Assembly (NCBI GenBank): GCA_964035545.1
Contig: OZ037773.1
Location: forward strand, 2,323,751 to 2,387,750
Direction: 5' to 3'
Length of the DNA stretch: 64,000 nucleotides
Source of the DNA: Bugula neritina
Taxonomy: Eukaryota; Animalia; Bryozoa
In this document: positions 10,036 through 63,534 of the stretch, one piece after another
Position numbering within the stretch: position 1 is the stretch's first letter
How the letters are laid out: each line of letters begins with the position of its first letter
The notes under the pieces: model-generated
Told to the model about the DNA's origin: nothing
The model's input: the letters and a program-made list of their open reading frames with translations, nothing else
Database searches by the model: none
Position numbers and translations under genes: made by a program

Positions 10036-10410
10036 ATGCCTCTTAAAGTTAGCTACAAAGGTGCCAAGAAAGCAGCAAAGGCTAAAGCAGCTCCAATGTC
10101 TGGAGACAAGAGAAAACAAATAAAAGGCAATGGAAGTTACAGCACATACATTACTTACAACGTGTTGAAGCAAGTCCACCAAGACACTGGTGTATCTAGC
10201 AGCGCCATGAGGATCATGGAGAGCTTTGTCAATGATATGTTCCATATAGTAGTGAATGAAGCATCTAGATTGGCAGACTACAACAGGAAGTCCATGATAA
10301 CAAGCCGAGAGGTAGAGACTGTCCTGAAGCTGATTCTGCCAGGAGAGTTAGCTAAGCATGCCTAGGCTGAGGGTACAAAGGCTGTAACTAAATACGCCAG
10401 CTCCAAGTAA
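10036..10410 (+). pseudogene. H2B: Divergent histone H2B copy with a premature stop
   Basis: GAG>TAG at 10363-10365 removes the alphaC helix ([14 protein letters not shown]). The frame continues to the normal TAA at 10408-10410. Confidence 0.9.
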
Positions 10411-15991: not shown

Positions 15992-16927
15992 ATGGAGAAT
16001 AGCAGCGTTCTGTGCGGTGACATCACTGACTTTTGTGTAGACTCTACTAGATCCGCAGCGTTTTCATCTTTCAACATTTTCAGTGTTATATTCAACATCA
16101 TCAATTTGGTTTTCCTGAAGAAGTTAGACAAATCCAAAAGAAACGCATCATTTTGGATAATAGTGAACATCGGTATCTGTGACGTTGTGACTTGCTCCTC
16201 CTTTTCTCTGGCAGTCAGCTGTGAATTGAACAGACAAATCATAACTTTACCAGCAGTTGGTGCTCGAACCTTTCAAGTTATAGTGATTACATTTGGCTTT
16301 GTCTCAATTGTTGCTAGAAATTTTGTATTGGAGACTGGCGGCTATGAGCGATACGTCTCCATCTGTCAGCCTTATCAAGTGAGCTATAACAAAGTGGTTA
16401 GCAATATGAAACTCTTCTTGGCCATTGTTTGGATATTTACCTTTGCTCTTATGACTATCACTATTGCCACTGATACCACCAAGTATTGCTTTGGTGAGTT
16501 CGGAGCTATCCCAAATGACTCCAATCCACAGACTAGTGTTGCGTTTGTTGGATCCATTACAACAGCTTTTGTCATCTCTGTCATCTGCTTATCTAAGACT
16601 TGGAGAGAGTTGAAGAGAATGCAGTCCAGAAGTACAGTTCCAGGAAAAGATGATCTGATAGTGAAGAGATCTGCCCAGTATATTATAATAATCTTCATCA
16701 CTCTTTACTTGTCCTACATTCCAACAGCCATATCCTTAGTTTGTAATAACCTTAATGATAGTTTAAAGGGCTTAGGATATTTGGCCAGATGGATTTCTTT
16801 CTATTACATTACAATTTTTAGCATTCTTAATGTTGTAATATATTTCATCATGACCCCAGGCTACCGTATTCATGTGATGAATTTACTCATGTTGAAGACT
16901 CCAACAGTTGGTCAAATTAAATCTTAG
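15992..16927 (+). CDS. Intronless 7TM rhodopsin-like GPCR (orphan/chemoreceptor-like), 311 aa
   Basis: Seven hydrophobic segments, TM2 NIGICD, TM3 YERYVSICQP (E/DRY motif), TM4 W, TM6 SYIP, TM7 NVVIY. Confidence 0.88.
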   Translation: MENSSVLCGDITDFCVDSTRSAAFSSFNIFSVIFNIINLVFLKKLDKSKRNASFWIIVNIGICDVVTCSSFSLAVSCELNRQIITLPAVGARTFQVIVITFGFVSIVARNFVLETGGYERYVSICQPYQVSYNKVVSNMKLFLAIVWIFTFALMTITIATDTTKYCFGEFGAIPNDSNPQTSVAFVGSITTAFVISVICLSKTWRELKRMQSRSTVPGKDDLIVKRSAQYIIIIFITLYLSYIPTAISLVCNNLNDSLKGLGYLARWISFYYITIFSILNVVIYFIMTPGYRIHVMNLLMLKTPTVGQIKS

Positions 16928-18791
16928 ACCATTACTATGATACAAGTTGTTGTAGTAGTTTTGTTAAACAATGTTCATGCTTGCTACATATTGTAACCAT
17001 AATTGTTTGATGTTGCTATGACAACATGAGAAATAATATATTTTGTTATGATATTTAAAAAACCCGCCATGAAAAAGATATGTTGTGTAGAGTAATGCTT
17101 TGAATAAATGTTAAATGTATTCTGTATTCCTATTAAATTGTGAACAAAATTTACAAAGGAAAGAAGTGTAGGAGTTGGCGGAACAGGAAGTTAGTGGTCT
17201 GAGTCCCGTCACATGATATGTTTGAAAGAGTATCCACTCATAGTTTCTCCTGCATGTGCAGCGTTTAAAAAATTTCTCAGCAGGCTTTAAATTAAAACCT
17301 TTTCATTAGATGTTCTCACGATAAACACTATAAACTTATATAATTATGAGCTTTTCGAGGCTTCGAATACACTTGCATATATGTTAATATAATATGGAAG
17401 CAATCGGTATATTATCAGCTCTGTGTAATGCCTAGATAGCTTTCCAACCAGAATGCACTGTTTTCAAAACAAAAAATGAATATGCAATTGATAACTCTAT
17501 AGTCTATACTCCGTACCAATAATTTCCGCGTGTGTAGCCCCTCTACGCCTCATAAAGAGGATAACTTGTAAAAGGTTGATAATAATAATATGTTCTTTAC
17601 GCTACCAGTCTATGCAACGCAGACACTCTTGAAATATTCAACAGCTACTAAAATTTAGGTTGCAGGCAAATTGGCGATCAACAATATTGAGGGGGGGGGA
17701 ATAAAGCTATTTGATTAGCAAGTCTCATGAGTATTTTGTAAGTCTCAAATAATTATTTATATTTCATCTTTATATATACTGGAACTTATTTATTTAACAT
17801 GATAGCTCATTTTTTCACTTTATTATTTTATTTAATAAAAGTGAAGTTTATTTTGTATCAAACATAATATTATATAACAGCTTCCAAGTGGGTTCAAGTC
17901 ATAATGATCACTTTGTTTTCACCTAGACCATGTAGTTAAGCAAATGGTTAGTTTGAAACACCCTGCTGGGTGAGTATGGAGATAACAGAGCTTAATCTAG
18001 CCAAGAAATGTAAAGCATAGCTATAGCATTAAATACAGTTGTTACGCACTAGCTTGGTACATCATACTTCACTATAATTATACTAATAGTAAGCAGCAGC
18101 TTTGGAACTCAAATTCTTAGGGTTGAATAGTAGATGTGGTGAGATCCATAACTAAAGCTGCACAGAAAAGCTAAATGTATTAGGAGTTCTACAGTTGATA
18201 TAATATTTGTGCGCATACTACATAATTTAATTTTTGTTAGGAGAAGGCTGATTCTAGCTTTCAACTGGTCCACTACTCCAGTCTAGCCAAGGTTCACCAA
18301 GGTTTAAGCTTTGAATTTTCTAGAGTCTAGACAAGCATTATCTGTGGATTATTGGTGTAAGTTATGAATCCTATCATAAATCTACTATACAGCTCACTGC
18401 AGCTCTAATAACTCTACTTCTGTAATGGTGTGACTGCAGGTAAAATCTGAACAGTAGCTATGAGTTGCTAAGGTGCCACCCATTAATGTTTATTATAGAC
18501 AACAGCAACTAAACAAATTGCACCAGGAGTCTGCTTCAACATAACTATTTTGATTTGTGAAGTCTGGGATGGACAATTCCTGGAATGCAGGTTAAGCCTG
18601 ATAGAAGATTATACTTTTTACTCAGTTGTTTATGTATACACTATACTTTACATAGTTTATATAAATTTAAATAGAACATGTTGATGAGTGAGTGCATTGC
18701 AAACTTTATAGAGCCCAATATATATCTAGAAGGTGTATCAATAATTTATTATTCAAAGGTTTGAACAACTCTACAAGTAAACATTTAAAGT

Positions 18792-18807
18792 GGCCCTGAA
18801 AAGGGCC
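18792..18807 (-). terminator. Histone 3' stem-loop of chimeric gene copy 1
   Basis: Reverse complement is GGCCCTTTTCAGGGCC, a perfect stem, about 44 nt after the TGA at 18851-18853 and embedded in H2B 3' flank sequence. Confidence 0.93.
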
Positions 18808-18850
18808 GTTGGGGTTAGTAGCGGAGCTTGGAGAGATTACTAACAGGTTG

Positions 18851-20301
18851 TCATAGACTAGAATGCGAGATTTCTTCGTCCACATGTCGACTGAGAAGTA
18901 GTTGCAGCAAAGTATTTTGTCTTTGCTTTACCTGTATAAAAAAATATTATACGTTAACAAATGGAACTGTTGTTAACATGGGTTTTTTAATAAATTGTAG
19001 TAGCTACAGATTAGAAATAAGTTTGCTTATTTTGCAATCAAGAAACAAAATTATCTTTCATAATTGTTGCCTACCTCATGAGTTGCTCGGCTTTGTAACT
19101 GTGAAGCCAGTTGGGTTAATATTTTGTCACTAAGGGTAAACCTTTCGCCACACTCCAAAGCTGCAGTCTTCAATGCTCTTAGAAGTATCTTGTCCTCAGC
19201 TCTAAAAGTATACCATCCCCATATTGCATGATTTATATTCTTCAACTTCAACAATGCATTTAAATGTAAAGTGCCACTGAAAGTACTGTGATAAAACTGT
19301 GGGTTTGAATGTAGCTAGTTGCCCTGCATGCTATAGTTATGAAGAACAGGTCGAAAAATTGTGTATAAATTATGGTAGCTTTATTGTGTAGAATAATATA
19401 ATAGGTCTGCATCCAGCGAGCTCCAGTAGTAGACTGAACTACACTGGAACTCGCTGGCTTTTATATACAAGCAGAACAAAGACATTCCTTTGTTGCAGAA
19501 ATGCCAACGATTCAAATTTCAACAGAGTAAAATATCTTAGTTCTCTTCCAAAGCTCTTTTCTAGTGGCCTATAGGTTCATTTTAAGTTACAAACGAAGAT
19601 TAGGTGAGTCAGATTTCACTTTTAGAAAGTAAGCTTCTGCACCAATATGCAATTTCAACGATTTTCAGTTTGACTATTAAAAGGGGTACTTTTTTCAGCA
19701 AAGGTATAAACAAAACTTCAGTACAGGGCGTCAACTTTATAACATTAAGTTTATACAATAGAGGAATTACCTTGTCCACGGTGCTATGACTGGTTGACCT
19801 GGGAGAGGTAAAGCTGGTGTGAGCTCCTTGGGGTCTGTACGGAGAGTAATGACCTCTGCAAATAACATCAGAAAGTAAAGATTATGCACAATTTACAAGT
19901 TGAAAAGAGAAATTTAGCAGCATAGGCTGAAGAAGTGCAATCTGAAACTTGCATTTACAGGAGTACAGCCGGTCACACATTACACTTCATCGGCCAATGT
20001 TATAGAGTTGAGTTTGAGCCAACATGATACACTCTACTTAAACAAACATTGGCTTGGGTATATTACAATACAGAAAAAAAATTTCTACACTCAAAACTCT
20101 ATAAAACTTACCATTACTGAGAGATAAATGACAGCCTTTAGTGTCATCATCACCTTCCTCATTCAGCTGACTCGGTGGGGGATCCAAGTGACGGTAATAG
20201 GCAGGTCTCAGGCCCCTGCGAGGTCCAGTACGTCCAGACATTCGAGCTGCTTTAGCTTTTCCTGCTTTCTTGGCACCTTTGTAGCTAACTTTAAGAGGCA
20301 T
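18851..20301 (-). CDS. Chimeric spliced gene, copy 1: H2B N-tail fused to a FLASH/GON4L-like SANT/Myb domain, 160 aa
   Basis: Exons 20301-20112, 19855-19771, 19201-19075 and 18931-18851. All introns are GT-AG with compatible phases 1, 2, 0. Protein [160 protein letters not shown]. Confidence 0.8.
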
Positions 20302-20560
20302 GCTATTCAGTTAGTGATAATGTTGAATTCTTGTTCTTGATGTAATGACTGCAACAATAGTTTGATGCTAAATGATGTTCAGATCTTAGGGCACTCTGTA
20401 TTTATATGTATCAACAGTAGTTAGAAATTATCCAATCAGATGGCGGTAGCTTAAACTGCCGCCTTAGTGTGCCCTAATGTTTACATTGAAAACAATTATT
20501 TGTCATAGACCAATGAAACTCGTAGAGCAATCTAATTTGCATATCTTATACAATATAGCC
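20302..20560 (-). promoter_or_regulatory. H2B promoter upstream of chimeric gene copy 1
   Basis: TATA (tatttata 20399-20406 on +), CCAAT 20432-20436, octamer ATTTGCAT 20535-20542. Inverted copy of 9790-10035. Confidence 0.8.
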
Positions 20561-21940
20561 AAGACAAACTGTTGGGGAAATAGGTAGGCAACTTCGAGTT
20601 GAATTCCAATAAGTTACTCTAAACTTTGAAATAATATTGTACTTTTCAACAATTATTGATATAATGTAAATTTTGACTTAAGTTTGTATATAACATCATT
20701 ATAGTGCATAGCTTATTTATTTTTATTTAGCCAGAACTTTAAACTTTTTAAAAAGTTTGGTCACTTTTAAAAGGCAAAACGTGAATTATTAAATATCTCT
20801 TTAAAAAAAAACATTACTCACTCCAAATAATCAGTATTGTGCTCACCAATCTATCCATAAGTTCACATAGTGGCACTTGTGTATTTACTCATATACAGTG
20901 TGAAAACTGCAGATAACTTCATTACTAGTATGACTATAAAATTACCTAAATAACCATGGGAATAGCTGAACTCCTATCATTCAATACAAGCAAGGTATAG
21001 ATAGTTTCTTCTTGATGCACAGCCTGGATATTTTTCTTATTAAGAAATCACAGGTGTGAGAATGGCTAAGGAAATTATTATTTTTAGCCTACAATTAATA
21101 AACTATACACAGATTAAATAAATAATTAAAATAGGCTATAGCAAACTATAGATATGTAGCTATACTTAACTAAAACTTCAGGTTAATTATAATATTGTGT
21201 TTATTAGAAATAATGTAATGTCATATATTTACGAACTCAATCATACTCTTTCTAATGAAATGGCTTCCAATATGATTACCCAGCCAACAGTTTATACTAG
21301 CATTGGGTAGAGAGTAGACAACTCTAGATAAAAACAATTTGTAAAAAGTATAGGGTGTGGTGCGGGCAGGAATTGTGTGGTTGTAGATACTATGATCTGT
21401 TTGACTAGATTGTTTAAAGTAGAGACAGGGGAATACATGTGTTAGAAATAAACATGTCCTACGTTTGTTTAATAATTGTTTAGGAATTTTTATGAGTAGT
21501 AATTTGTATTTTAAATATACATGCATAGATCCCACTGTCAGTTATAATGCATTATAAATATTTGTAAAGATTTTGGTTGTTCCCCATAATAAATGTATTT
21601 TTATAGAGAATCTAAGCTTATGCAGCCTAATAGCTTGCATATATTGCTTACTTCAGTTAAAACCATTATAAAATATAATTATGTATAATAAATCTGTATG
21701 TTTATAGTTTCTTACATGTAGTTAAACATTTGTATATTGTTGAGGTTTTAATAAACTTGGGAAAAATTGCCCTATAAACCAATACTATATTAAAGTGCCA
21801 TGCAAACAAAATTTTAAAAAAATTACAACCCAAAGTTGAAATCATTTTAAGGTTGAATGTTTTACCTTGCTTACTCCTAAAAGTAAGCTTTTTATGTAGT
21901 TGAATTAGATTTTTATTTATAGTATGCTATCTAGCTAAAA

Positions 21941-23630: not shown

Positions 23631-23735
23631 TTAAGATTCAATTTGGCCTGACTGTTGGAGTCTTCAACATGAGTAAATTCATCACATGAGTACGGTAGCC
23701 TGGGGTCATGATGAAATATATTATTACATTAAAAA
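23631..23735 (-). pseudogene. GPCR C-terminal fragment
   Basis: Reverse complement encodes NVIIYFIMTPGYRTHVMNLLMLKTPTVRPN-like sequence and joins directly to H2B upstream flank. Confidence 0.8.
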
Positions 23736-24283
23736 AAAAATGCCCACAATTATGATTATTTGGAGTGCGTAATGTTTTTTTTTGAAAGAAATATTTAATA
23801 ATTCTCATTTTGCCTTACAAAAGTGACCAAACTTTTTAAAAAGTTTAAAGTTCTGGTTAAATAAAAATAAATAAGCTATGCACTAATGATGTTATATACA
23901 AAGTTAGGTCAAAATCTACATTATATCAATAATTGTTGAAAAGTACAATATTATTTTGAAGTTTAAAGTAATTTATTGGAATTCAACTCAAAGTTGCCTA
24001 TACCAATTTCCCCAACAGTTTGACGTGGCTATATTGTATAAGATATGCAAATTAGATTGTTCTCCGAGTTTCATTGGTCTATGACAAATAATTGTTTTCA
24101 ATGTAAACATTAGGGCACACTAAGGCTTCAGTTTACGCACGCCATCTGATTGGATAATTTCTAACTACTGTTGATACATATAAATACAGCGTGCCCTAAG
24201 ATCTGAACATCATTTAGCATCAAACTACTGTTGCAGTCCCTACATCGAGAACAAGCATTCAACATTATCACTAACTGAACAGC

Positions 24284-24658
24284 ATGCCTCTTAAAGTTAG
24301 CTCCAAAGGTGCCAAGAAAGCAGCAAAGGCTAAAGGAGCTCCAATGTCTGGAGACAAGAGAGAACAAAGAAAAGGCAAAGGAAGTCCCAGCACATACATT
24401 ACTTACAATGTGTTGAAGCAAGTCCACCAAAACACTGGTGTATCTAGCAGCGCCATGAGGATCATGGAGAGCTTTGTCAATGATATGTTCCATATAGTAG
24501 TGAATGAAGCATCTAGATTGGCAGACTACAACAGGAAGTCCATGATAACAAGCCGAGAGGTAGAGACTGTCCTGAAGCTGATTCTGCCAGGAGAGTTGGC
24601 TAAGCATGCCGAGGCTGAGGGTACAAAGGCTGTAACTAAATACGCCAGCTCCAAGTAA
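24284..24658 (+). CDS. H2B: Divergent histone H2B variant, 124 aa, intact
   Basis: [32 protein letters not shown] and GTKAVTKY motifs. Promoter upstream, stem-loop downstream. Confidence 0.92.
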
Positions 24659-26653: not shown

Positions 26654-26948
26654 TATGTAGCATAATTATGCTCTCAGTTTATTAGGTAGCATGAACTCTT
26701 AGTCTATGATGTAGCATATACTCTCAGTCTATGATGTAGCATATACTCTCAGTCTGTAATGTAGCATATGCTCTCAGTTAGTAAAGGAGTGTATGCTCTC
26801 ATGTATATAATGTAGCATACTTTCAGCCTATGATGTAGCATGCTCTCAGTCTATGCTGTAACATACTTTCTGTCTATATGGTATAGTTTGCTATCAGTCT
26901 ATGATGTAGTGTATGTTCTCAGTCTGTATACTCTCAGTATACTGCAAT

Positions 26949-27258
26949 CATACATACATACATACATACATACATACATACATACATACATACATACATA
27001 CATACATACATACATACATACATACATACATACATACATACATACATACATACATACATACATACATACATACATACATACATACATACATACATACATA
27101 CATACATACATACATACATACATACATACATACATACATACATACATACATACATACATACATACATACATACATACATACATACATACATACATACATA
27201 CATACATACATACATACATACATACATACATACATACATACATACATACATACATACA

Positions 27259-27292
<34 letters not shown>

Positions 27293-27305
27293 CATACATA
27301 CATAC
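26949..27305. repeat. (TACA)n microsatellite, expanded
   Basis: About 350 bp here versus a few units at the paralogous sites near 12700 and 59170. Confidence 0.98.
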
Positions 27306-27596
27306 ACACATACACACATCCACATATACATACACACAACCATACTCAATTCTCACTTAGATCTACCTGGTGAAACATCGTGTATCTACTGTATCCACAA
27401 GTGAGTTAGTAACTCTGTGTTGCAGCTGAGATATGTCTTAGAAGACACGCTGTACGAGGCCGGAGTGGACATGTATATTTCTGCCCATGAGCACTCCTAT
27501 GAGCGGGCCTGGCCTATCTATGACAGAAAGGTATTCCCTGTCTGCTGTGTTTATATGTTAGGAAAGGGAGTTTTCTCCTCATGTAGATATGTACGT

Positions 27597-32503: not shown

Positions 32504-33439
32504 ATGGAGAATAGCAGCGTTCTGTGCGGTGACATCACTGACTTTTGTGTAGACTCTACTAGATCCGCAGTGTTTTCAACTTTCAACATTTTCAGTGTTA
32601 TATTCAACATCATCAATTTGGTTTTCCTGAAGAAGTTAGACAAATCCAAAAGAAACGCATCATTTTGGATAATAGTGAACATCGGTATCTGTGACGTCGT
32701 GACTTGCTCCTCCTTTTTTCTGGCAGTCAGCTGTGAATTGAACAGACAAATCATAACTTTACCAGCCGTTGGTGATCGAACCTTTCAAGTTATAGTGATT
32801 ACATTTGGCTTTGTCTCAATTGTTGCTAGAAATTTTGTAGTGGCGACTGGCAGCTATGAGCGATACGTCTCCACCTGTCAGCCTTATCAAGTGAGCTATA
32901 ACAAAGTGGTTAGCAATATGAAACTCTTCTTGGCCATTGTTTGGATATTTACTTTTGCCCTTATTACTATCACTATTGCCACTGATACCACTAAGTATTG
33001 CTTTGGTGAGTTCGGAGCTATCCCAAATGACTCCAATCCACAGACTAGTGTTGCGTTTGTTGGATCCATTACAACAGCTTTTGTCATCTCTGTCATCTGC
33101 TTATCTAAGGCTTGGAGAGAGTTGAAGAGAATGCAGTCTAGAAGTACAGTTCCAGGACAAGATGATCTGATAGTGAAGAGATCTGCCCGGTATATTATAA
33201 CAATCTTCATCACTCTTTACTTGTCCTACATTCCAACAGCCATATCCTTAGTTTGTAATAACCTTAATGATATTTTAAAAGGCTTAGGATATTTGGCCAG
33301 ATGGATTTCTTTCTATTACATTACAATTTTTAGAATTTTTAATGTAATAATATATTTCATCATGACCCCAGGCTACCGTATTCATGTGATGAATTTACTC
33401 ATGTTGAAGACTCCAACAGTCGGTCAAATTGAATCTTAG
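32504..33439 (+). CDS. Intronless 7TM GPCR, 311 aa, intact paralogue
   Basis: Near-identical to 15992-16927, YERY motif retained. Differences include VVATG for VLETG and S>R in TM7. Confidence 0.88.
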   Translation: MENSSVLCGDITDFCVDSTRSAVFSTFNIFSVIFNIINLVFLKKLDKSKRNASFWIIVNIGICDVVTCSSFFLAVSCELNRQIITLPAVGDRTFQVIVITFGFVSIVARNFVVATGSYERYVSTCQPYQVSYNKVVSNMKLFLAIVWIFTFALITITIATDTTKYCFGEFGAIPNDSNPQTSVAFVGSITTAFVISVICLSKAWRELKRMQSRSTVPGQDDLIVKRSARYIITIFITLYLSYIPTAISLVCNNLNDILKGLGYLARWISFYYITIFRIFNVIIYFIMTPGYRIHVMNLLMLKTPTVGQIES

Positions 33440-35511: not shown

Positions 35512-37546
35512 TATATCTATACTTGTGTTTATACATGCAAATTAGATAGTTCTACTAATTTTATTGGTCAATAATGAAGAAGTGTTTTGTTGTTATTTTT
35601 TTATAGTGATAATAATATTATGGATCGAAATTTTCAGATCATATCTAAGAATTTAAAATTCTATAATTCTACAAAAATAGTTTGTAAAAGTATGAAATAT
35701 CAACCTATACAAAAGTAAAGAATAATAGCGTATTATAACGCAGTACGGTATACCAAGCTATAGTGAAACAACTGCATTTAATGGTTATAGCTGTTGCTCT
35801 TATGCCATTTCTCAACCATAAGATTAGGTTTAGTAAATATATATGTATATAATATGGTAAGCTCTGTTCTCATGCAAGTCCTCAATTCATATAGATGCAA
35901 TAAAGAGACTAGACTAGTCGTTGTATTTTCTTGGAGGTGCAACAGTAAATGCAACCAGTGATAAATGTCTTACACCAATGTTCCACTATATAATATCCTG
36001 ATTATTGAAATGCTTGTTTACAGCGAGCTGTTAGATTCTACCCAAGAATTGATGTCTTCTGGATAACCCAATTAATTTACCAATTATCCATTAGGTACCA
36101 TTTGGTGGTTTTTTTAAAGCTACTGCTCATAAAAAATCTTTGTGTTTTTTCTCTGTTGAGATCAGAAATTTTGTACGTAACTGTATTAGTGTACGGTACT
36201 TAAGCACTATTTTAGCCCAGTGAGGTGTGCATCCTTTTTCAAAAGTTTTTTGTAAGTAATTCTATTGTTGTCTCTAGCTTTTAGATTTATTTATTCAGCA
36301 TCACCCATGATGACCTTTCACTAAACTAGCAAAGTGGACCAGTTGAAAGCTAGCATCAGCTTTTTCATTACAGAAATTAAAATATATATTATGTAATATG
36401 GGCTGATATTAATTGCAGGGCTCATAGTATATTTAGCTATACTGTGCAGCTTTAGTTTAATAGAGTTGCTGTGGGTTGCTTTACAATAATCATACAATAA
36501 TTTTGCTTTATCTAATTTGTATGGTAATATTTCTTTTTAGCTGAAACAACTTATTGCTTCAAAACCACTGTTCTTAGAGTTGTCTTCTATATTAATAGAT
36601 AAGTGTGACTTTAATATCTGAAGCTATGTAGAGCATCTGCCACCCAATGACCTGCAAAAGATATTATTTATTGATTATTAATATTATTAATAATATTTAT
36701 ATTATTATTATATAATAATTATTAATAATCATTAAGATATTAATAATTATTATTATTATAGTACACTATATTCTAATGAACTACCACCTTGTGCACATAC
36801 AAAAAGGATGTTTATTTCATATTTCTGAGGTGACAATCCATAAACATGTTAATATTGTAAATTTAGAACAGCTCTGCCATGACGGGTGTAATGTAAAAGA
36901 AAGCAGCCCTGTTAAACTAAAGCTGAGCAGAAAATGAACTGCTGTAGATATATATAATTAGCCCTGCACTCATTGTGTGTGGATATTACATAATATATAT
37001 ATTATTACACTTTTTGTAAGGAAAAAGCTGATGGTACCTTCCAACTGATCCACTACTGGTGTAAAATAATCTAGAGGGTATAATAAACAAGTATTATCTG
37101 TGGATTATTGGTCTTATAAGTTATGAATCCTTTCATATCTACTATTCAACTTACAGTTCTTATAACTCTATTTCTGTAATGGTGTGACTGCAGGTAAAAT
37201 TTGAACAGTAGCTATGAGTTGCTAAGGTGCCACTCATTCGTGTTCATTATAGACAACAGCAACTAAACAAATTGCACCATGAGTCTGCTTCAACATAACT
37301 ATTTTGATTTGTGAAGTCTGGGATGGACAATTCCTGGAATGCAGGTTGAGCATGATAGAAGATTGTACTTTTTATTCAGTTGTTTATGTATACACTATAC
37401 TTTACATAGTTTCTATAAATTTTAAATAGAACATGTTGATGAGTGAGTGCATTGCAAACTTTATAGAGCCCAATATATATCTAGAAGGTTTATCAATAAT
37501 TTATTATTCAAAGGTTTGAACAACTCTACAAGTAAACATTTAAAGT

Positions 37547-37562
37547 GGCCCTGAAAAGGCCC
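37547..37562 (-). terminator. Histone 3' stem-loop of chimeric gene copy 2, with one stem mismatch
   Basis: Reverse complement is GGGCCT-TTTC-AGGGCC. The third base pair is G-G. Confidence 0.88.
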
Positions 37563-37605
37563 GTTGGGGTTAGTAGTGGAGCTTGGAGAGATTACTAACA
37601 GGTTT

Positions 37606-39042
37606 TCATAGACTAGAATGCGAGATTTCTTCGTCCACATATCGACTGAGAAGTAGTTGCAGCAAAATATTTTGTCTTTGCTTTACCTGTATAAAAAAAT
37701 ATTATACGTTAACAAATGGAACTGTTGTTAACATGGGTTTTTTAATTAATTGTAGTAGCTACAGGTTAGAAATAAGTTTGCTTATTTTGCAATCACAAAA
37801 CAAAATTATCTTTCATAATTGTTGCCTACCTCATGAGTTGCTCGACTTTGTAACTGTGAAGCCAGTTGGGTTAATATTTTGTCACTAAGGGTAAACCTTT
37901 TGCCACACTCCATAGCTGCAGTCTTCAATGCCCTTAGAAGTATCTTGTCCTCAGCTCTAAAAGTATACCATCCCCATATTGCATGATTTATATTCTTCAA
38001 CTTCAACAATGCATTTAAATGTAAAGTGCCACTGAAAGTACTTTGATAAAACTGTGGGTTTGAATGTAGCTAGTTGCTTTGCATGCTATAGTTATGAAGA
38101 ACAGGTCGAGAAAATTAGTATAAATTAGGGTAGCTTTATTGTGTAGAATGATATAATAGGTCTGCATCCAGCGAGCTCCAGTAGTAGACTGAACTACGCT
38201 GGAACTCACTGGCTTTTATATACAAGCAGAACAAAGACATTCCTTTGTTGCAGAAATGCCAACGTTTCAAATTTCAACAGAGTAAAATATCTTAGCTCTC
38301 TTCCAAAGCTCTTTTCTAGTAGCCTATAGGTTCATTTTTAGTTACAAAGATTAGGCGAGTCAGATTTCACTTTTAGAAAGTAAGCTTCTGCACCAATATG
38401 CAATTTCAACGATTTTCAGTTTGACTATTAAAAGGGGTACTTTTTTCAGCAAAGGTATAAACAAAACTTTAGTACAGGGCGTCAACTTTATAACATTAGG
38501 TTTATACAATAGAGGAATTACCTTGTCCACGGTGCTATGACTGGTTGACTTGGGAGAGGTAAAGCTGGTGGGAGCTCCTTGGGGTCTGTACGGAGAGTAA
38601 TGACCTCTGTAAATAACGTCAGAAAGTAAAGATTATGCACAGTTTACAAGTTGAAAAGAGAAGTTTAGCAGCATAGGCTGAAGAAGTGCAATCTGAAACG
38701 TGCATTTACAGGAGTACAGCCAGTCACACATTACACTTCATCGGCCAATGTTATAGAGTTGAGTTTGAGCCAACATGATACAATCTACTTAAACAAACAT
38801 TGGCTTGGGTATATTACAATACAGAAAACAATTTTCTACACTCAAAACTTACCAATACTGAGAGATGAATGACAGTCTTTAGTGTCATCATCACCTTCCT
38901 CATTCAGCAGACTCGGAGGGGGATCCAAGTGACGGTAATAGGCAGGTCTCAGACCCTTGCGAGGTCCAGCACGTCCAGACATTCGAGCTGCTTTAGCCTT
39001 TCCTGTTTTCTTGGCGCCTTTGTAGCTAACTTTAAGAGGCAT
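37606..39042 (-). CDS. Chimeric spliced gene, copy 2: H2B N-tail fused to a FLASH/GON4L-like SANT/Myb domain, 160 aa
   Basis: Exons 39042-38853, 38606-38522, 37956-37830 and 37686-37606. Same lengths (190/85/127/81 nt), GT-AG sites and open frame as copy 1. 13 amino-acid differences by hand count. Confidence 0.8.
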
Positions 39043-39300
39043 GCTGTTCAGTTAGCGATATTAATGTTGAATGCTTGCTCCCGATGTAATGACTGCAACA
39101 GTAGTTTGATGCTAAATGATGTTCAGATCTTAGAGCACTCTGTATTTATATGTATAAACAGTAGTTAGAAATGATCCAATCAGATAGCGGTTGCTTAAAC
39201 TGCCGCCTTAGCGTGCCCTAATGTTTACATTGAAAACAATTATTTGTCATAGACCAATGAAACTCGTAGAACAATCTAATTTGCATATCTTATACAATAT
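39043..39300 (-). promoter_or_regulatory. H2B promoter upstream of chimeric gene copy 2
   Basis: tatttata 39143-39150, CCAAT 39176-39180, ATTTGCAT 39279-39286. Confidence 0.8.
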
Positions 39301-41221
39301 AGCCACGCCAAACTGTTGGGGAACTAGGTAGGCAACTTCGAGTTGAATTCCAATAAGTTACTCTAAACTTTGAAATAATATTTTACTTTTCAACAATTAT
39401 TGATATGATGTAGATTTTGACTTAAGTTTGTATATAACATCATTATAGTGCATAGCTTATTTATTTTTATTTAACCAGAACTTTAAACTTTTTCAAAAGT
39501 TTGGTCACTTTTATAAGGCAAAACGTGAATTATTTAATATCTCTTTGAAAAAAAACATTACTCACTCCAAATAATCAGTATTGTGCTCACCAATCTACAC
39601 ATAAGTTCACATAGTGGCACTTGTGCATTTACTCATATACAGTGTGTAAATTGCAGATAACTTCATTACTGACCAGTATGACTATAAAATTATCTAAATA
39701 ACCGTGGGAATAGCTGAACTCCTATCATTCAATACAAGCAAGGTATAGATAGGTTCTTCTTGATACACAGCCTGGATATTTTTCTTATCAAGAAATCACA
39801 GGTGTGAGAATGGCTAAGGAAATTAATATTTTTAGCCTACAAATAATAAACTATACACAGATTAAATAAATAATTAAAATAGGCTATAGCAAACTATTTT
39901 CTGACAAAAAAAAGGAATCTTTTGCAAAAAGCTCTAATTATACAGGTCAAAGGAGCTAGGTGCAAAACGAATATGTTCATGAAAGCATTAATTATACATG
40001 TGTTCAGTATTTGTGCTATAAAATTTTTATATTTTATATCAACTAGTTGTTGGGAGCAAAATTAACAACTTGGAGTAATTTGAGGAATACAATTTCATTG
40101 GAGATGGTTAGGTAATTTCAATTTGATGTAGGTTATACTGTCTTTTTGATTATCCCTCTTTAAATTTTGGCTCCAACTCTCAAATTTAATATTTCAGTAA
40201 TTAAAAATAAATAGCAATTTATATACACACAGAGTTTAATAAATTGTATTTCAAACATTCCCTTATACAGCTCAGTGTGAAGTTGATGTCACTGGTTCCT
40301 ACTTGATGAAGCATTTTCATTCTGAGATTCCATTGAGGAATTTATAACATGTTATATGCTTTAGACAGGTGTGCCATAAACATGGAGAAACTATGACTCT
40401 GTGGTATATATATAAAATGAGGCATTTAAAAGGTGATTCTCCCACTTTTATTCATATTATACATATGCACATAAAGTAATGTTATGTGTTATGTCTTTGA
40501 GGGCCACATAAAAGTTAAGCTGGTGGCCCTTCTTAAATGTAGTTAAACATTTGTATATTGTTGAGGTTTTAATAAACTTGAGAAAAATTGCCCTACATAA
40601 GCAAATACTATATTAGAATGCCATGCAATCGAAATTTTAAAAGAATTACAACCCAAAGTAGAAATCATTTTTAGGTTGAATGTTTTACCTTGCTTACTCC
40701 TAAAAGTAAGCTTTTTATGTAGTTAAATTAGATTTTTATTTATAGTATGCTATCTAGCTAAAAGATTCTTGCTGTTAGTTTTGCTTTAATTGAAGCGCAA
40801 ATAATATACATATAGTATGGGAAAGTTTATAATGATATACCTTTTTGTAGCAGACTATGTAACCTATAATATAGTGTAGATATTTAAACTTATACTGACG
40901 CATTTGAATTAGTATAGGAGCCAATATTACATAATATATATATATATATGTTATACTTTTTGTAATGAATAAGCTGGTCCGCTATACTGGTGTAGAACTT
41001 TCTAGAGAGTCTAGACAAGTATTATCTACAGATTATTGGTGTAATTTAGGAATAATCCTATCATGTCTACTATTCAACTCACAGTTCTTATAACTGTGTT
41101 TTTATAATGGTGTAACCAGGCAAAATTTGAACATATTTGCAATCAGCTCCAAAGCTGCCTCACACTGTCCATGTTTATAGACAACAGCACCTGAACAAGT
41201 TGCATCAGGTGTCTGCTTGGA

Positions 41222-41568: not shown

Positions 41569-41584
41569 GGCCCTTTTCAGGGCC
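41569..41584 (+). terminator. Histone 3' stem-loop
   Basis: GGCCCTTTTCAGGGCC. Confidence 0.95.
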
Positions 41585-44148: not shown

Positions 44149-44428
44149 CTAAGATTCAATTTGACCGACTGTTGGAGTCTTCAACATGAGTAAATTCATC
44201 GCATGAATACGGTAGCCCGGGGTCATGACGAAATATATTACAACATTAAGAATGCTAAAAATTGTAATGTAATAGAAAGAAATCCATCTGGCCAAATATC
44301 CTAAGCCCTTTAAAATATCATTAAGGTTATTACAAACTAAGGATATGGCTGTTGGAATGTAGGACAAGTAAAGAGTGATGAAGATTATTATAATATACTG
44401 GGCAGATCTCTTCACTATCAGATCATCT
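44149..44428 (-). pseudogene. GPCR 3' fragment (TM6-TM7-C-tail)
   Basis: DDLIVKRSAQYIIIIF...KTPTVGQIES*. The 5' part is replaced by downstream-flank sequence. Confidence 0.88.
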
Positions 44429-45393
44429 GTTTGATACAAAATAAACTTGGTTTTTTTCAAATAGAAAATAAAGTGAAAAAATTAGCCATTAGTCAAATAA
44501 ATAAGTTCCAGTATGTATAAAGATTAAACATAAATAATTATTTGAATATTACAAAATACTCGTGAGACTTGCTATTCAAGTAGCTATTTTTCCCCCAATT
44601 ATTGTTGATCACCAATTTGTCTGCAACTTAAACCTTGGTAACTGTTGAATATTTAAAGAGTGTCTCAGTTGCATAGAGTGGAAGTGTAAATATCATTATC
44701 AAACTTTTACAAGTTATCCTCTTTATGAGGCGTATAGGGGGCTACTCTAGCACACACGGATTATTGGTATAGACTATAGAGTTATCAATTGCATATTTAC
44801 TTTTTAATTTTGAAAATTGTGCATTTTAGTTGGAAAGTTATCTATGCATTGCACAGAGCTCATAATATACTAATTACTTTCATATTATGTCAATATATTA
44901 TATGCAAGTGTATTCGTAGCACCAAAAAGTTCATATGAGTTTAGAGTGTCTATTGTGAGAACCTCTGATGAAAAGATTTTAATGTAAAGCCTGCTAAGAA
45001 CATATTTACATGTGGCACATGAGAAATTATGAGTGGATACTCTCTTGAACATAGCAGGTGTGTGGACTAAAACCACTAACTTAGTGTTAATTCACTAACT
45101 CCAGCGCCAAGACTGATTTCCTTTGTAACCTTTCTTTTCAATTTAATACTAATTAATATAAAAATTAACTTTAAGACATTTATTTAGAGCACTATAACTT
45201 AACACGACATATCTTTTTCATGACTGATTTTTTAAATATCGTAGCAAAATATACTATTAATTGATATTTCAATTCATGTTGCCATGGCAACTTCAAACAA
45301 TTGCAGTTACAATGTGGTCATTCTTTGACATTAAAATGAGCAAGTATGAACATTGTTTACCAAAACTACAACAACTTTTATTATAGTAATGAT

Positions 45394-47604: not shown

Positions 47605-47979
47605 ATGCCTCTTAAAGTTAGCTCCAAAGGTGCCAAGAAAACAGAAAAGGCTAAAGCAGCTCCAATGCCTGGAGACAAGAGAAAACAAAGAAGAGGCAAA
47701 GGAAGTTACAGCGCATACATTACTTACAACGTGTTGAAGCAAGTCCACCCAGACACTGGTGTATCTAGCAGCGCCATGAGGATCATGGAGAGCTTTGTCA
47801 ATGATATGTTCCATATAGTAGTGAATGAAGCATCTAGATTGGCAGACTACAACAGGAAGTCCAAGATAACAAGCCGAGAGGTAGAGACTGTCCTGAAGCT
47901 GATTCTGCCAGGAGAGTTAGCTAAGCATGCCGAGGCTGAGGGTACAAAGGCTGTAACTAAATACGCCAGCTCCAAGTAA
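47605..47979 (+). CDS. H2B: Divergent histone H2B variant, 124 aa, intact
   Basis: Histone-fold motifs as at 24284. Retains SYS and HPD. Promoter and stem-loop present. Confidence 0.92.
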
Positions 47980-52048: not shown

Positions 52049-52871
52049 TATAGAAACAACAACACTATAAACTTTAGCAACAGTGTTTTTTGAATAAACT
52101 CTTGTGGAGCTTATTAGTTTATATTATTGCAATGTAAATAAAACACCATCATTGAACTCTGCCATGAAATGTTTCATTGAATGTTATAAAGTATTGCAGC
52201 AGCTTTGGGGCTCTTTGCAAATATGTTCAAATTTTACCTGCAGTCACACCATTGCAAAAAATAGAGTTATGAGAACTGTGAGTTGAATAGTAGATATGAT
52301 AGGATTCATAACTTACACCAATAATCTGTAGATAATACTTGTCTAGAGTCTAGAAAATTTCAAATCTAAACAAATATTTTGTTTATTAAGGATTAACCAC
52401 CCTGAACCTTCGCTAGACTGGAGTAGCCATACTCACCCAGTATGGTGTTTCAAACTAACCATTCACTTGACTATAGGTGGTCTAGGTCAGAACTCAAGTG
52501 ATCATTGGCTTGAACCCACATGGAAGCTGTTATATAATATGTTTGATACAAAATAAACTTGGCTTTTATTAAATAAAAAATGAAGGGAAAAAAATTAGCT
52601 ATCTGTTAAATAAATAAGTTCCAGCTAGTATATATAAAGATGAAACATAAATAATTATTTGAGACTTACAAAATACTCATGAGACTTGCTATTCAAATAG
52701 CTTTATCTCCCTCCCCCCCCCCTTCGAATATTGTTGATCGCCAATTTGCCTGCAACCTAAATTTTAGTAGCTGTTGAATATTTCAAGAGTGTCTGCGTTG
52801 CATAGACTGGTAGCGTAAAGAACATATTATCAAACTTTTGCAAGTTATCCTCTTTATGAGGCGTAGAGGGG

Positions 52872-53520
<649 letters not shown>

Positions 53521-54147
53521 GATTATTGGTATAGACTATAGAGTTATCAATTGCATATTCATTTTTTGTTTTGAAAACAGTGCATTTTAGTTGGAAATTT
53601 ATCTATGCATTGCACAGAGCTCATAATATACTAATTGCTTTCATATTATGTCAATATATTATATGCAAGTGTATTCGTAGCACCAAAAAGTTCATATGAG
53701 TTTATAGTGTCGATTGTGAGAACCTCTGATGAAAAGATTTTAATGTAAAGCCTGCTAAGAAAATATTTACATGTGGCACAGGAGAAATTATGAGTGGATA
53801 CTCTCTTGAACATAGCAGGTGTGTGGACTAAAACCACTAACTCAGTGTTAATTCACTAACTCCTGCACCAAGACTGTTTTCCTTTGTAGCCTTTCTTTTC
53901 AATTTAATACTAATTAATATAAAAATTAACTTTAAAACATTTATTAAGAGCATTACTTAACACAACATATCTTTTTCATGACTGACTTTTAAATATCATA
54001 ACATAATATACGATTTCATATTTTAATTCATGTTGCCATGTCAACTTCATACAATTATGGTTACAATATATAATCATTCTTCCACATTAAAACTATAGCA
54101 AGCATGAACGTTTAACAAAAAGACAGTTATTTTATTATAGTAATGAT

Positions 54148-56397: not shown

Positions 56398-56772
56398 ATG
56401 CCTCTTAAAGTTAGCTCCAAAGGTGCCAAGAAAGCAGCAAAGGCTAAAGGAGCTCCAATGTCTGGAGACAAGAGAGAACAAAGAAAAGGCAAAGGAAGTC
56501 CCAGCACATACATTACTTACAATGTGTTGAAGCAAGTCCACCAAGACACTGGTGTATCTAGCAGCGCCATGAGGATCATGGAGAGCTTTATCAATGATAT
56601 GTTCCATATAGTAGTGAATGAAGCAGCTAGATTGGCAGACTACAACAGGAAGTCCACCATAACAAGCCGAGAGGTAGAGACTGTCCTGAAGCTGATTCTG
56701 CCAGGAGAGTTAGCTAAGCATGCCGAGACTGAAGGCACAAAGGCTGTGACTAAATACGCCAGCTCCAAGTAA
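56398..56772 (+). CDS. H2B: Divergent histone H2B variant, 124 aa, intact
   Basis: Histone-fold motifs. Promoter and stem-loop present. Confidence 0.92.
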
Positions 56773-62598: not shown

Positions 62599-63534
62599 AT
62601 GGAGAATAGCAGCGTTCTGTGCGGTGACATCACTGACTTTTGTGTAGACTCTACTAAATCCGCAGCGTTTTCATCTTTCAACATTTTCAGTGTTATATTC
62701 AACATTATCAATTTGGTTTTCCTGAAGAAGTTAGACAAATCCAAAAGAAACGCATCATTTTGGATAATAGTGAACATCGGTATCTGTGACGTTGTGACTT
62801 GCTCCTCCTTTTCTCTGGCAGTCAGCTGCAATTTGAACAGACAAATCATAACTTTACCAGCAGTTGGTGCTCGAACCTTTCAAGTTATAGTGATTACATT
62901 TGGCTTTGTCTCAATTGTTGCTAGAAATTTTGTATTGGAGACTGGCAGCTATGAGCGATACGTCTCCATCTGTCAGCCTTATCAAGTGAGCTATAACAAA
63001 GTGGTTAGCAATATGAAACTCTTCTTGGCCATTGTTTGGATATTTACCTTTGCTCTTATGACTATCACTATTGCCACTGATACCACCAAGTATTGCTTTG
63101 GTGAGTTCGGAGCTATCCCAAATGACTCCAATCCACAGACTAGTGTTGCGTTTGTTGGATCCATTACAACAGCTTTTGTCATCTCTGTCATCTGCTTATC
63201 TAAGACTTGGAGAGAGTTGAAGAGAATGCAGTCCAGAAGTACAGTTCCAGGAAAAGATGATCTGATAGTGAAGAGATCTGCCCAGTATATTATAATAATC
63301 TTCATCACTCTTTACTTGTCCTACATTCCAACAGCCATATCCTTAGTTTGTAATAACCTTAATGATATTTTAAAGGGCTTAGGATATTTGGCCAGATGGA
63401 TTTCTTTCTATTACATTACAATTTTTAGCATTCTTAATGTTGTAATATATTTCATCATGACCCCAGGCTACCGTATTCATGTGATGAATTTACTCATGTT
63501 GAAGACTCCAACAGTTGGTCAAATTAAATCTTAG
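62599..63534 (+). CDS. Intronless 7TM GPCR, 311 aa, intact paralogue
   Basis: Four amino-acid differences from 15992-16927 by eye. YERY motif retained. Confidence 0.88.
   Translation: MENSSVLCGDITDFCVDSTKSAAFSSFNIFSVIFNIINLVFLKKLDKSKRNASFWIIVNIGICDVVTCSSFSLAVSCNLNRQIITLPAVGARTFQVIVITFGFVSIVARNFVLETGSYERYVSICQPYQVSYNKVVSNMKLFLAIVWIFTFALMTITIATDTTKYCFGEFGAIPNDSNPQTSVAFVGSITTAFVISVICLSKTWRELKRMQSRSTVPGKDDLIVKRSAQYIIIIFITLYLSYIPTAISLVCNNLNDILKGLGYLARWISFYYITIFSILNVVIYFIMTPGYRIHVMNLLMLKTPTVGQIKS

Follow-up and report, generated by a model that had tools for sequence, protein, structure and literature searches.

A gene on the minus strand of a Bugula neritina contig carries introns and foreign exons between the two flanks of a histone H2B gene, and it raises the question of where its transcripts would end: at the histone stem-loop that follows the stop codon or at a poly(A) signal farther downstream. 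The gene lies in a 64,000-nucleotide stretch of contig OZ037773.1 (positions 2,323,751 to 2,387,750; the window), whose numbering is used below. The initial annotation proposed a spliced non-histone mRNA that ends in the stem-loop and named read-through to a downstream poly(A) signal as the alternative. From comparison of the sequences, we favour with moderate confidence a family of coding chimeras in which the histone 3′ signals are a relic, and whose transcripts would be spliced and then polyadenylated at or beyond 18750-18745.

Architecture and origin of the chimeric gene

The gene (copy c1) contains an open reading frame of 160 codons in four exons on the minus strand (ATG at 20301, TGA at 18853-18851). 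It is flanked by an H2B promoter and 23 H2B codons on the 5′ side and by an H2B 3′ UTR on the 3′ side. All exon borders are those of GT..AG introns, of which there are three. The features of c1 are as follows.

20302-20800, minus strand: promoter and 5′ UTR, H2B-derived according to identity to H2B upstream regions and motifs
20542-20535, minus strand: octamer ATGCAAAT, a promoter motif
near 20514-20510 and 20436-20432, minus strand: inverted CCAAT boxes, promoter motifs
20406-20399, minus strand: promoter motif TATAAATA, from motif reading
20112-20301, minus strand: exon 1, ending in phase 1 with the GT donor next to it
19856-20111, minus strand: intron 1, GT..AG, from the parent gene according to comparison with that gene
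19771-19855, minus strand: exon 2, 85 nt, with the end ...PWT(R), from the copy alignment
19202-19770, minus strand: intron 2 with an interspersed repeat of ~215 bp, from comparison with the genome and the parent
19075-19201, minus strand: exon 3, 127 nt, AEDKILL... helices of a putative SANT/Myb-like C-terminal domain
18932-19074, minus strand: intron 3, GT..AG
18851-18931, minus strand: exon 4 with the stop codon TGA at 18853-18851
18808-18850, minus strand: 3′ UTR ahead of the stem, parent-derived at 18850-18842 and H2B-derived from 18841
18792-18807, minus strand: histone stem-loop with a perfect 6-bp stem and a UUUC loop, from pattern, Rfam and RNAfold
18763-18773, minus strand: HDE-like element TAGAGTTGTTC, separated from the stem by 19 nt, with gtagag at 18774-18769
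18745-18750, minus strand: AATAAA poly(A) signal, 41 nt beyond the stem

c1 departs from a replication-dependent histone gene in its three introns and in the replacement of the H2B fold codons from codon 24 on. Two blocks of H2B homology enclose the foreign sequence in a BLAST comparison against the window. The upstream block (20800-20233) comprises the promoter, the 5′ UTR and 23 codons, and its promoter contains the H2B octamer, CCAAT and TATA elements of the histone type. The ~570 bp of upstream sequence in c1 are 92.4-93.7% identical to the corresponding regions of four H2B variant genes that lie intact in the window. The downstream block (18841-18500) is an H2B 3′ flank with 88.7-93.3% identity to five H2B 3′ flanks. 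Within exon 1, codons 1-23 (20301-20233) encode the H2B N-terminal tail, and the sequence is parent-derived and in frame from 20232.

The 3′ anatomy described in the initial annotation is confirmed. The TGA codon is followed by 9-10 parent-derived nucleotides (18850-18842) before H2B homology begins at 18841, the exact stem-loop 16-mer GGCCCTTTTCAGGGCC follows the foreign exon at 18807-18792, an HDE-like gtagag lies past the stem at 18774-18769 and the 43 nt between stop and stem are free of AATAAA. The AATAAA at 18750-18745, 41 nt past the stem, was not part of that annotation.

The 1391-bp interior of c1 matches one other place in the genome (G000:C4:17595101-17596563) in three blocks at 79-86% identity. 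At that locus, which is on a different contig from c1, the matching sequence constitutes the final four exons of the parent gene, with identical intron positions, phases, stop and reading frame. The 5′ breakpoint falls within a parental exon, and the frame is kept. Since the introns came along, the coding replacement is placed at the DNA level. An H2B variant gene thus retained the promoter and 5′ UTR together with its initial 23 codons and the 3′ flank, and its histone-fold coding part was swapped at the DNA level for the last four exons of the parent together with three introns. The stem-loop and the HDE were brought along with the H2B 3′ flank.

The identity of the donor is read from the architecture of the parent. 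Open reading frames 1.5-2.3 kb upstream of the donated exons contain two PAH matches in Pfam, one at 25.6 bits (cut-off 21.3) and one just under the cut-off at 19.5 bits. The foreign part of c1 is the extreme C-terminus of the parent, which starts with W-T-R-x-E-D-x-I-L-L and continues into two more predicted helices. PAH repeats combined with a C-terminal helical domain of this start form what we take to be the GON4L/YARP/Mute architecture. From this parental architecture and the motif, we infer that the donor is a PAH-repeat, GON4L/YARP/Mute-like gene. Pfam and PDB searches with single-exon queries and an exon 3 profile returned nothing relevant to a SANT/Myb fold, the domain being split across exons 2-4, and an ESM Atlas look-up with the parent N-terminal ORF gave no usable match. 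The predicted product is a protein of 160 residues that consists of the H2B tail and the C-terminal 137 residues of the parent, including the putative SANT/Myb-like end. Human MiniFLASH, reportedly described by Yang and colleagues in 2014, is said to be another short protein bearing this SANT/Myb domain.

The interspersed repeat of ~215 bp in intron 2 (about 19502-19284) is absent from the parent gene and appears to be a later gain. It is also missing from one allele or copy in public run X1, where a joint connects 19287 to 19511. The repeat has at least 35 other genomic copies at 79-94% identity among the matches listed and has a SINE- or MITE-like appearance.

Copy family and coding status

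Five full chimeric copies are located within ~145 kb of one contig: c1, c2 and three copies outside the window. The second copy in the window has the following features.

37254-39544, minus strand: chimeric copy c2, with the gene at 37500-39042 and exons at 39042-38853, 38606-38522, 37956-37830 and 37686-37606
37562-37547, minus strand: stem-loop of c2 with a G.G mismatch
37505-37500, minus strand: AATAAA of c2

Both chimeric junctions of c1 are present in the four further genomic copies. Two public runs also cover the stretch, both as contigs compared at 90% likeness; run X1 is labelled metagenomic RNA-Seq and comprises ~260 Mb of contigs, and run X2 is of unstated kind. A contig of run X1 spans the 3′ junction (18790-18919), and a contig of run X2 spans the 5′ junction (20138-20312). 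A third source is a metagenome contig of 2230 bp from another sample (L029; JGI metagenome 3300003318), in which the exon 1 junction and the donor recur, with identities of 79% for amino acids and 86% for nucleotides. This contig stops 7 nt past the called ORF, at 38 nt beyond the exon 1 donor. Further chimeric loci were not found by an exact-pattern scan or a peptide-pattern scan of metagenome contigs.

Mis-joining of H2B and GON4L-like reads during assembly was considered since the region is repetitive, and no support for it was found. The two junctions recur in five diverged copies, each of them is spanned by an independent contig and the 5′ junction is shared by the metagenome contig. On these grounds an assembly artefact is extremely improbable and was rejected.

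A partial duplicate in inverted orientation (L006; G000:C9:2301305-2301775, plus strand), with 86% identity to chimeric exon 1 and intron 1, adjoins the promoter of copy c5.

The coding sequence is intact throughout the family. All five copies have an open frame of 160 codons and keep all six splice sites. In the five-copy alignment, no indel event is observed in 483 exon columns, compared with eight in 917 intron columns; a Poisson estimate gives ~4 expected exon indels and P ~0.015. The dN/dS ratio, added up over the single exons and leaving out split codons, is 0.29-0.39 between the chimeras and the parent and 0.38 between the chimera and the metagenome contig over exon 1, at a dS of ~0.28. 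Among the five copies, dN/dS is ~0.7, and variable columns make up 8.9% of exons and 6.2% of introns. Taken together, the comparisons suggest a reading frame that is protected, yet a protein that is fast-evolving or weakly constrained.

Several of these observations would also suit a family of silent or decaying chimeric pseudogenes that was passively amplified with the H2B/GPCR segmental repeats and yields no stable mRNA. The ratio of ~0.7 among copies, with exons no more conserved than introns, speaks for this reading, and the 3′ signals are decaying. Spliced contigs are missing from both public runs: the contigs of X1 and X2 cover introns and flanks as well as exons, and no exon-exon joint occurs in them at any exon junction. 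The sole joint longer than 100 nt in the two runs is 19287 to 19511, the form without the intron 2 repeat, and three other listed joints skip 18-86 nt inside introns. The 160-residue product has no annotated record either; with exon 1 as query, phmmer retrieved from 1.84 billion representatives just one 66-residue unspliced ORF, which belongs to the metagenome contig and forms a singleton cluster. The pseudogene explanation is nevertheless opposed by the frame and six splice sites in five of five copies, by the excess of intron over exon indels, by the dN/dS of 0.3-0.4 against both the parent and the metagenome copy and by the persistence of the junction across a dS of ~0.28, and we regard it as unlikely.

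Histone 3′ signals and the predicted transcript end

The exact stem-loop 16-mer has seven matches in the window, compared with 0.01 expected. In c1, the stem is preceded by a CCAAC 5′ flank, and the features of the class (G/C-rich 6-bp stem, U-rich 4-nt loop and A/C-rich 5′ flank) are present in c1 and absent as a set from c2-c5. A local search with the Rfam Histone3 model (RF00032) scores c1 at 30.7 bits (E 4.9e-07), below the gathering score of 34 bits, because of an insertion of 2-3 nt after the stem. For the intact H2B genes in the window, the scores are 34.1-38.1 bits.

The 3′ flanks were aligned for the five chimeras and five H2B copies, seven of the ten being in the window, and were compared with 27 canonical histone genes drawn from seven stretches of the histone clusters of this genome. 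The exact 16-mer is found in all five H2B variant copies and in 26 of the 27 canonical genes. Among the chimeras, the stem is perfect in c1 alone, and the other four copies contain one or two stem mismatches. The stems of c2, c4 and c5 read GGGCC..., with a G.G mismatch at the third pair, and c3 has a second change. c1 differs from the other copies by the stem C at 18805, a G in c2-c5, and by a C at 18886. RNAfold assigns the canonical fold to c1 and the H2B genes at -11.4 kcal/mol, whereas the broken stems adopt a shifted register and a 3-nt loop, at -8.2 and -5.4 kcal/mol.

The spacing downstream of the stem is altered in the entire family. Common to all chimeras are a 3-nt spacer insertion that follows the stem and, at the 5′ edge of the HDE, a change from A to T; c4 lost 5 nt subsequent to the shared insertion. 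The stem-to-HDE distance is 19 nt in the chimeras, compared with 16 nt in the H2B variant genes and 13-16 nt in the 25 canonical genes with a readable AGAG/AGTG core, so that c1 lies outside the spacing of the histone genes of this genome. The HDE core of c1 (TAGAGTTGTTC) is itself acceptable, and a canonical H2A gene has the TAGAG variant as well.

An AATAAA is located 41 nt beyond the stem in all ten aligned copies, five chimeric and five H2B, and one canonical H2B gene whose flank is related has the signal too. This gene, in a canonical cluster on the minus strand (L017; G000:C9:4376400-4379700), has the 3′ flank '...gttgttcaaacc.g.aaataataaattatt' in common with the H2B variants, and the AATAAA after the HDE therefore predates the variant genes. 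Of the 27 canonical histone genes, 8 have an A(A/T)TAAA hexamer no more than 120 nt away, and the genome is AT-rich. The hexamer alone is weak evidence, because these 8 canonical genes have one at such a distance as well.

Several features speak for SLBP/U7 cleavage of spliced c1 transcripts just past the stem-loop, which would produce a non-histone, intron-derived mRNA whose 3′ end is of the histone type and whose expression is coupled to S phase. The stem and loop of c1 are perfect, the 5′ flank is correct and the stem is 43 nt past the stop. The HDE core is inside the variation of the canonical genes, and the H2B promoter is kept. The genome encodes an SLBP RNA-binding domain and contains at least 45 histone stem-loops. 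A genome search for U7 snRNA with Rfam RF00066 gave nothing, as did the search controls, and none of the candidates from two pattern searches for an anti-HDE sequence with an Sm site had a convincing 3′ hairpin.

Cleavage at the stem-loop is opposed by the rest of the family. Four of five paralogues lack a canonical stem yet have open frames, which indicates that the family does not depend on the stem. The stem-loop end is disfavoured because four of five stems are broken, the 19-nt spacing is outside 13-16 nt and AATAAA is kept in every copy; the Rfam score of c1 is also under the gathering threshold. In addition, PMC3661734 reports, in a passage citing Pandey (1990), that stem-loop-dependent processing does not proceed properly once a histone gene is given an intron. 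A spliced non-histone mRNA terminating in the stem-loop is disfavoured at the level of the family on this sequence evidence, and for c1 itself we consider such an end improbable.

The intact stem of c1 can be explained in another way. The tree of the five copies has no resolved topology and contains conflicting shared sites, which point to gene conversion. Over the 5′ part that stems from H2B, c1 shares 93% identity with the H2B variant genes of this genome but only 85-87% with the metagenome contig, and the H2B-derived part of that contig is equally distant from the chimeras and the H2B genes of this genome. This pattern points to H2B-derived flanks that evolve in concert with neighbouring H2B genes within each genome. 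The intact c1 stem needs no selection, because gene conversion from H2B could keep or restore it, and it could have been refreshed in this manner. The summed branch length of the copies is ~0.076, which corresponds to an estimated ~1.2 changes in 16 nt under neutrality, and at least two changes are seen; the stem changes in the chimeras may represent only two mutational events, near the neutral expectation. Overall, the stem-loop and HDE of the chimeras appear to behave as an unselected relic.

Polyadenylation downstream of the stem-loop is the preferred reading. Splicing of the pre-mRNA would be followed by cleavage and polyadenylation, mostly at the AATAAA at 18750-18745 or further downstream, and the c1 stem-loop would thereby be left inside the 3′ UTR. 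The read-through that the initial annotation had offered as its alternative is accordingly judged likelier, on the sequence, than an end at the stem-loop. Polyadenylation agrees with the literature, because the intron block is reported in the cited passage of PMC3661734 and because spliced, polyadenylated transcripts are documented for human replication-dependent histone genes, some of which retain the stem-loop (PMC5100578).

One contig of run X1 ends at 18790, 2 nt after the stem, at a depth of 172. This end was examined as a histone-type RNA end and rejected, since a de Bruijn branch point at which the chimeric and H2B flanks diverge (ACT|TTAAATG and ACT|AATG) accounts for it better. The depth of the contig is inflated because its k-mers are shared with H2B.

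Relation to known systems and genomic neighbourhood

The c1 family combines two known kinds of event, the birth of a chimeric gene and histone genes with dual 3′ signals. It is an unusual variant of them, in that the histone fold gave way to part of a histone-gene regulator, introns included, and the resulting unit was amplified to five copies. A close likeness is to human HIST1H2BC/D/K, HIST1H2AC and HIST2H2AA3, in which one unit combines splicing with a stem-loop and a poly(A) signal downstream, and some isoforms retain the stem-loop inside a polyadenylated 3′ UTR (PMC5100578, PMC3661734). The human genes encode a histone and have their introns after the ORF, whereas c1 has foreign exons in place of the histone fold and introns within the ORF. 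H2A.X likewise has two alternative 3′ end signals in tandem with the stem-loop first, but it is intronless and encodes a histone.

The intron-insertion constructs of Pandey et al. (1990), as described where PMC3661734 and PMC9756948 cite them, resemble c1 in that a single transcription unit contains an intron and, downstream of it, a histone stem-loop. As presented in those citing passages, they were engineered and assayed in mammalian cells, whereas c1 is a natural multi-copy gene. The locus had been presented as a natural test of whether splicing and U7-type processing are compatible. That test is less new than claimed: the general compatibility question has already been addressed by experiment, the intron effect being reported in the passage of PMC3661734 citing Pandey (1990), and spliced polyadenylated histone mRNAs are described in PMC5100578. 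The locus is informative in other respects. It is best read as displaying the fate of histone 3′ signals after loss of the histone: the stem-loop and spacing drift, and the poly(A) signal stays, in genes whose open frame and splice sites are preserved. The family also provides a built-in comparison between one copy with an intact stem and four copies with broken stems.

A likeness to FLASH, YARP (GON4L) and Mute concerns the protein. Through its C-terminal SANT/Myb domain, YARP binds the C-terminus of NPAT and is directed to histone locus bodies (PMC7432317), and the foreign part of c1 sits where YARP has this domain. NPAT binding is known for the human proteins, whereas the domain of c1 is putative and read from its sequence. 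If c1 transcripts end at the stem-loop, c1 would be a rare natural spliced non-histone mRNA that uses the histone 3′ end machinery, and a probable histone-locus-body targeting domain would be under histone-type cell-cycle control. A bolder extension is that c1 and the ancestral chimera produced a spliced mRNA cleaved by SLBP/U7, which would place a GON4L/YARP-type targeting domain under S-phase control; the domain could compete with FLASH and GON4L for NPAT, with a self-limiting feedback on histone expression as the outcome, and the gene would be a natural instance in which splicing and U7 processing occur together. This proposal is speculative, and we give it little credence.

The surroundings of the chimeras are rich in H2B variant copies. 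Solitary, divergent H2B variant genes encoding 124 residues are located on the plus strand at 24284-24658, 47605-47979 and 56398-56772, each with a perfect stem-loop, an HDE and a downstream AATAAA. A further plus-strand copy (10036-10365), also with a perfect stem-loop, HDE and AATAAA, stops 15 codons early (109 residues). The stem-loop at 41569-41584 on the plus strand has lost its HDE by an 8-nt deletion and has no intact H2B ORF of at least 90 residues upstream; it is probably a dead H2B copy.

Three near-identical intronless ORFs of 311 residues that resemble 7-transmembrane receptors are present on the plus strand (15992-16927, 32504-33439 and 62599-63534), and fragments of further receptor-like copies are found at 23638-23808 and 44149-44460. 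The receptor-like ORFs are part of segmental repeats that also bear the H2B variant and chimeric genes. Long microsatellites occupy 1416-2118, 26840-27404 and 52757-53590; they are TA/CA-rich, with a 4-nt ATAC-type unit and a (TG)n tract of ~700 bp.
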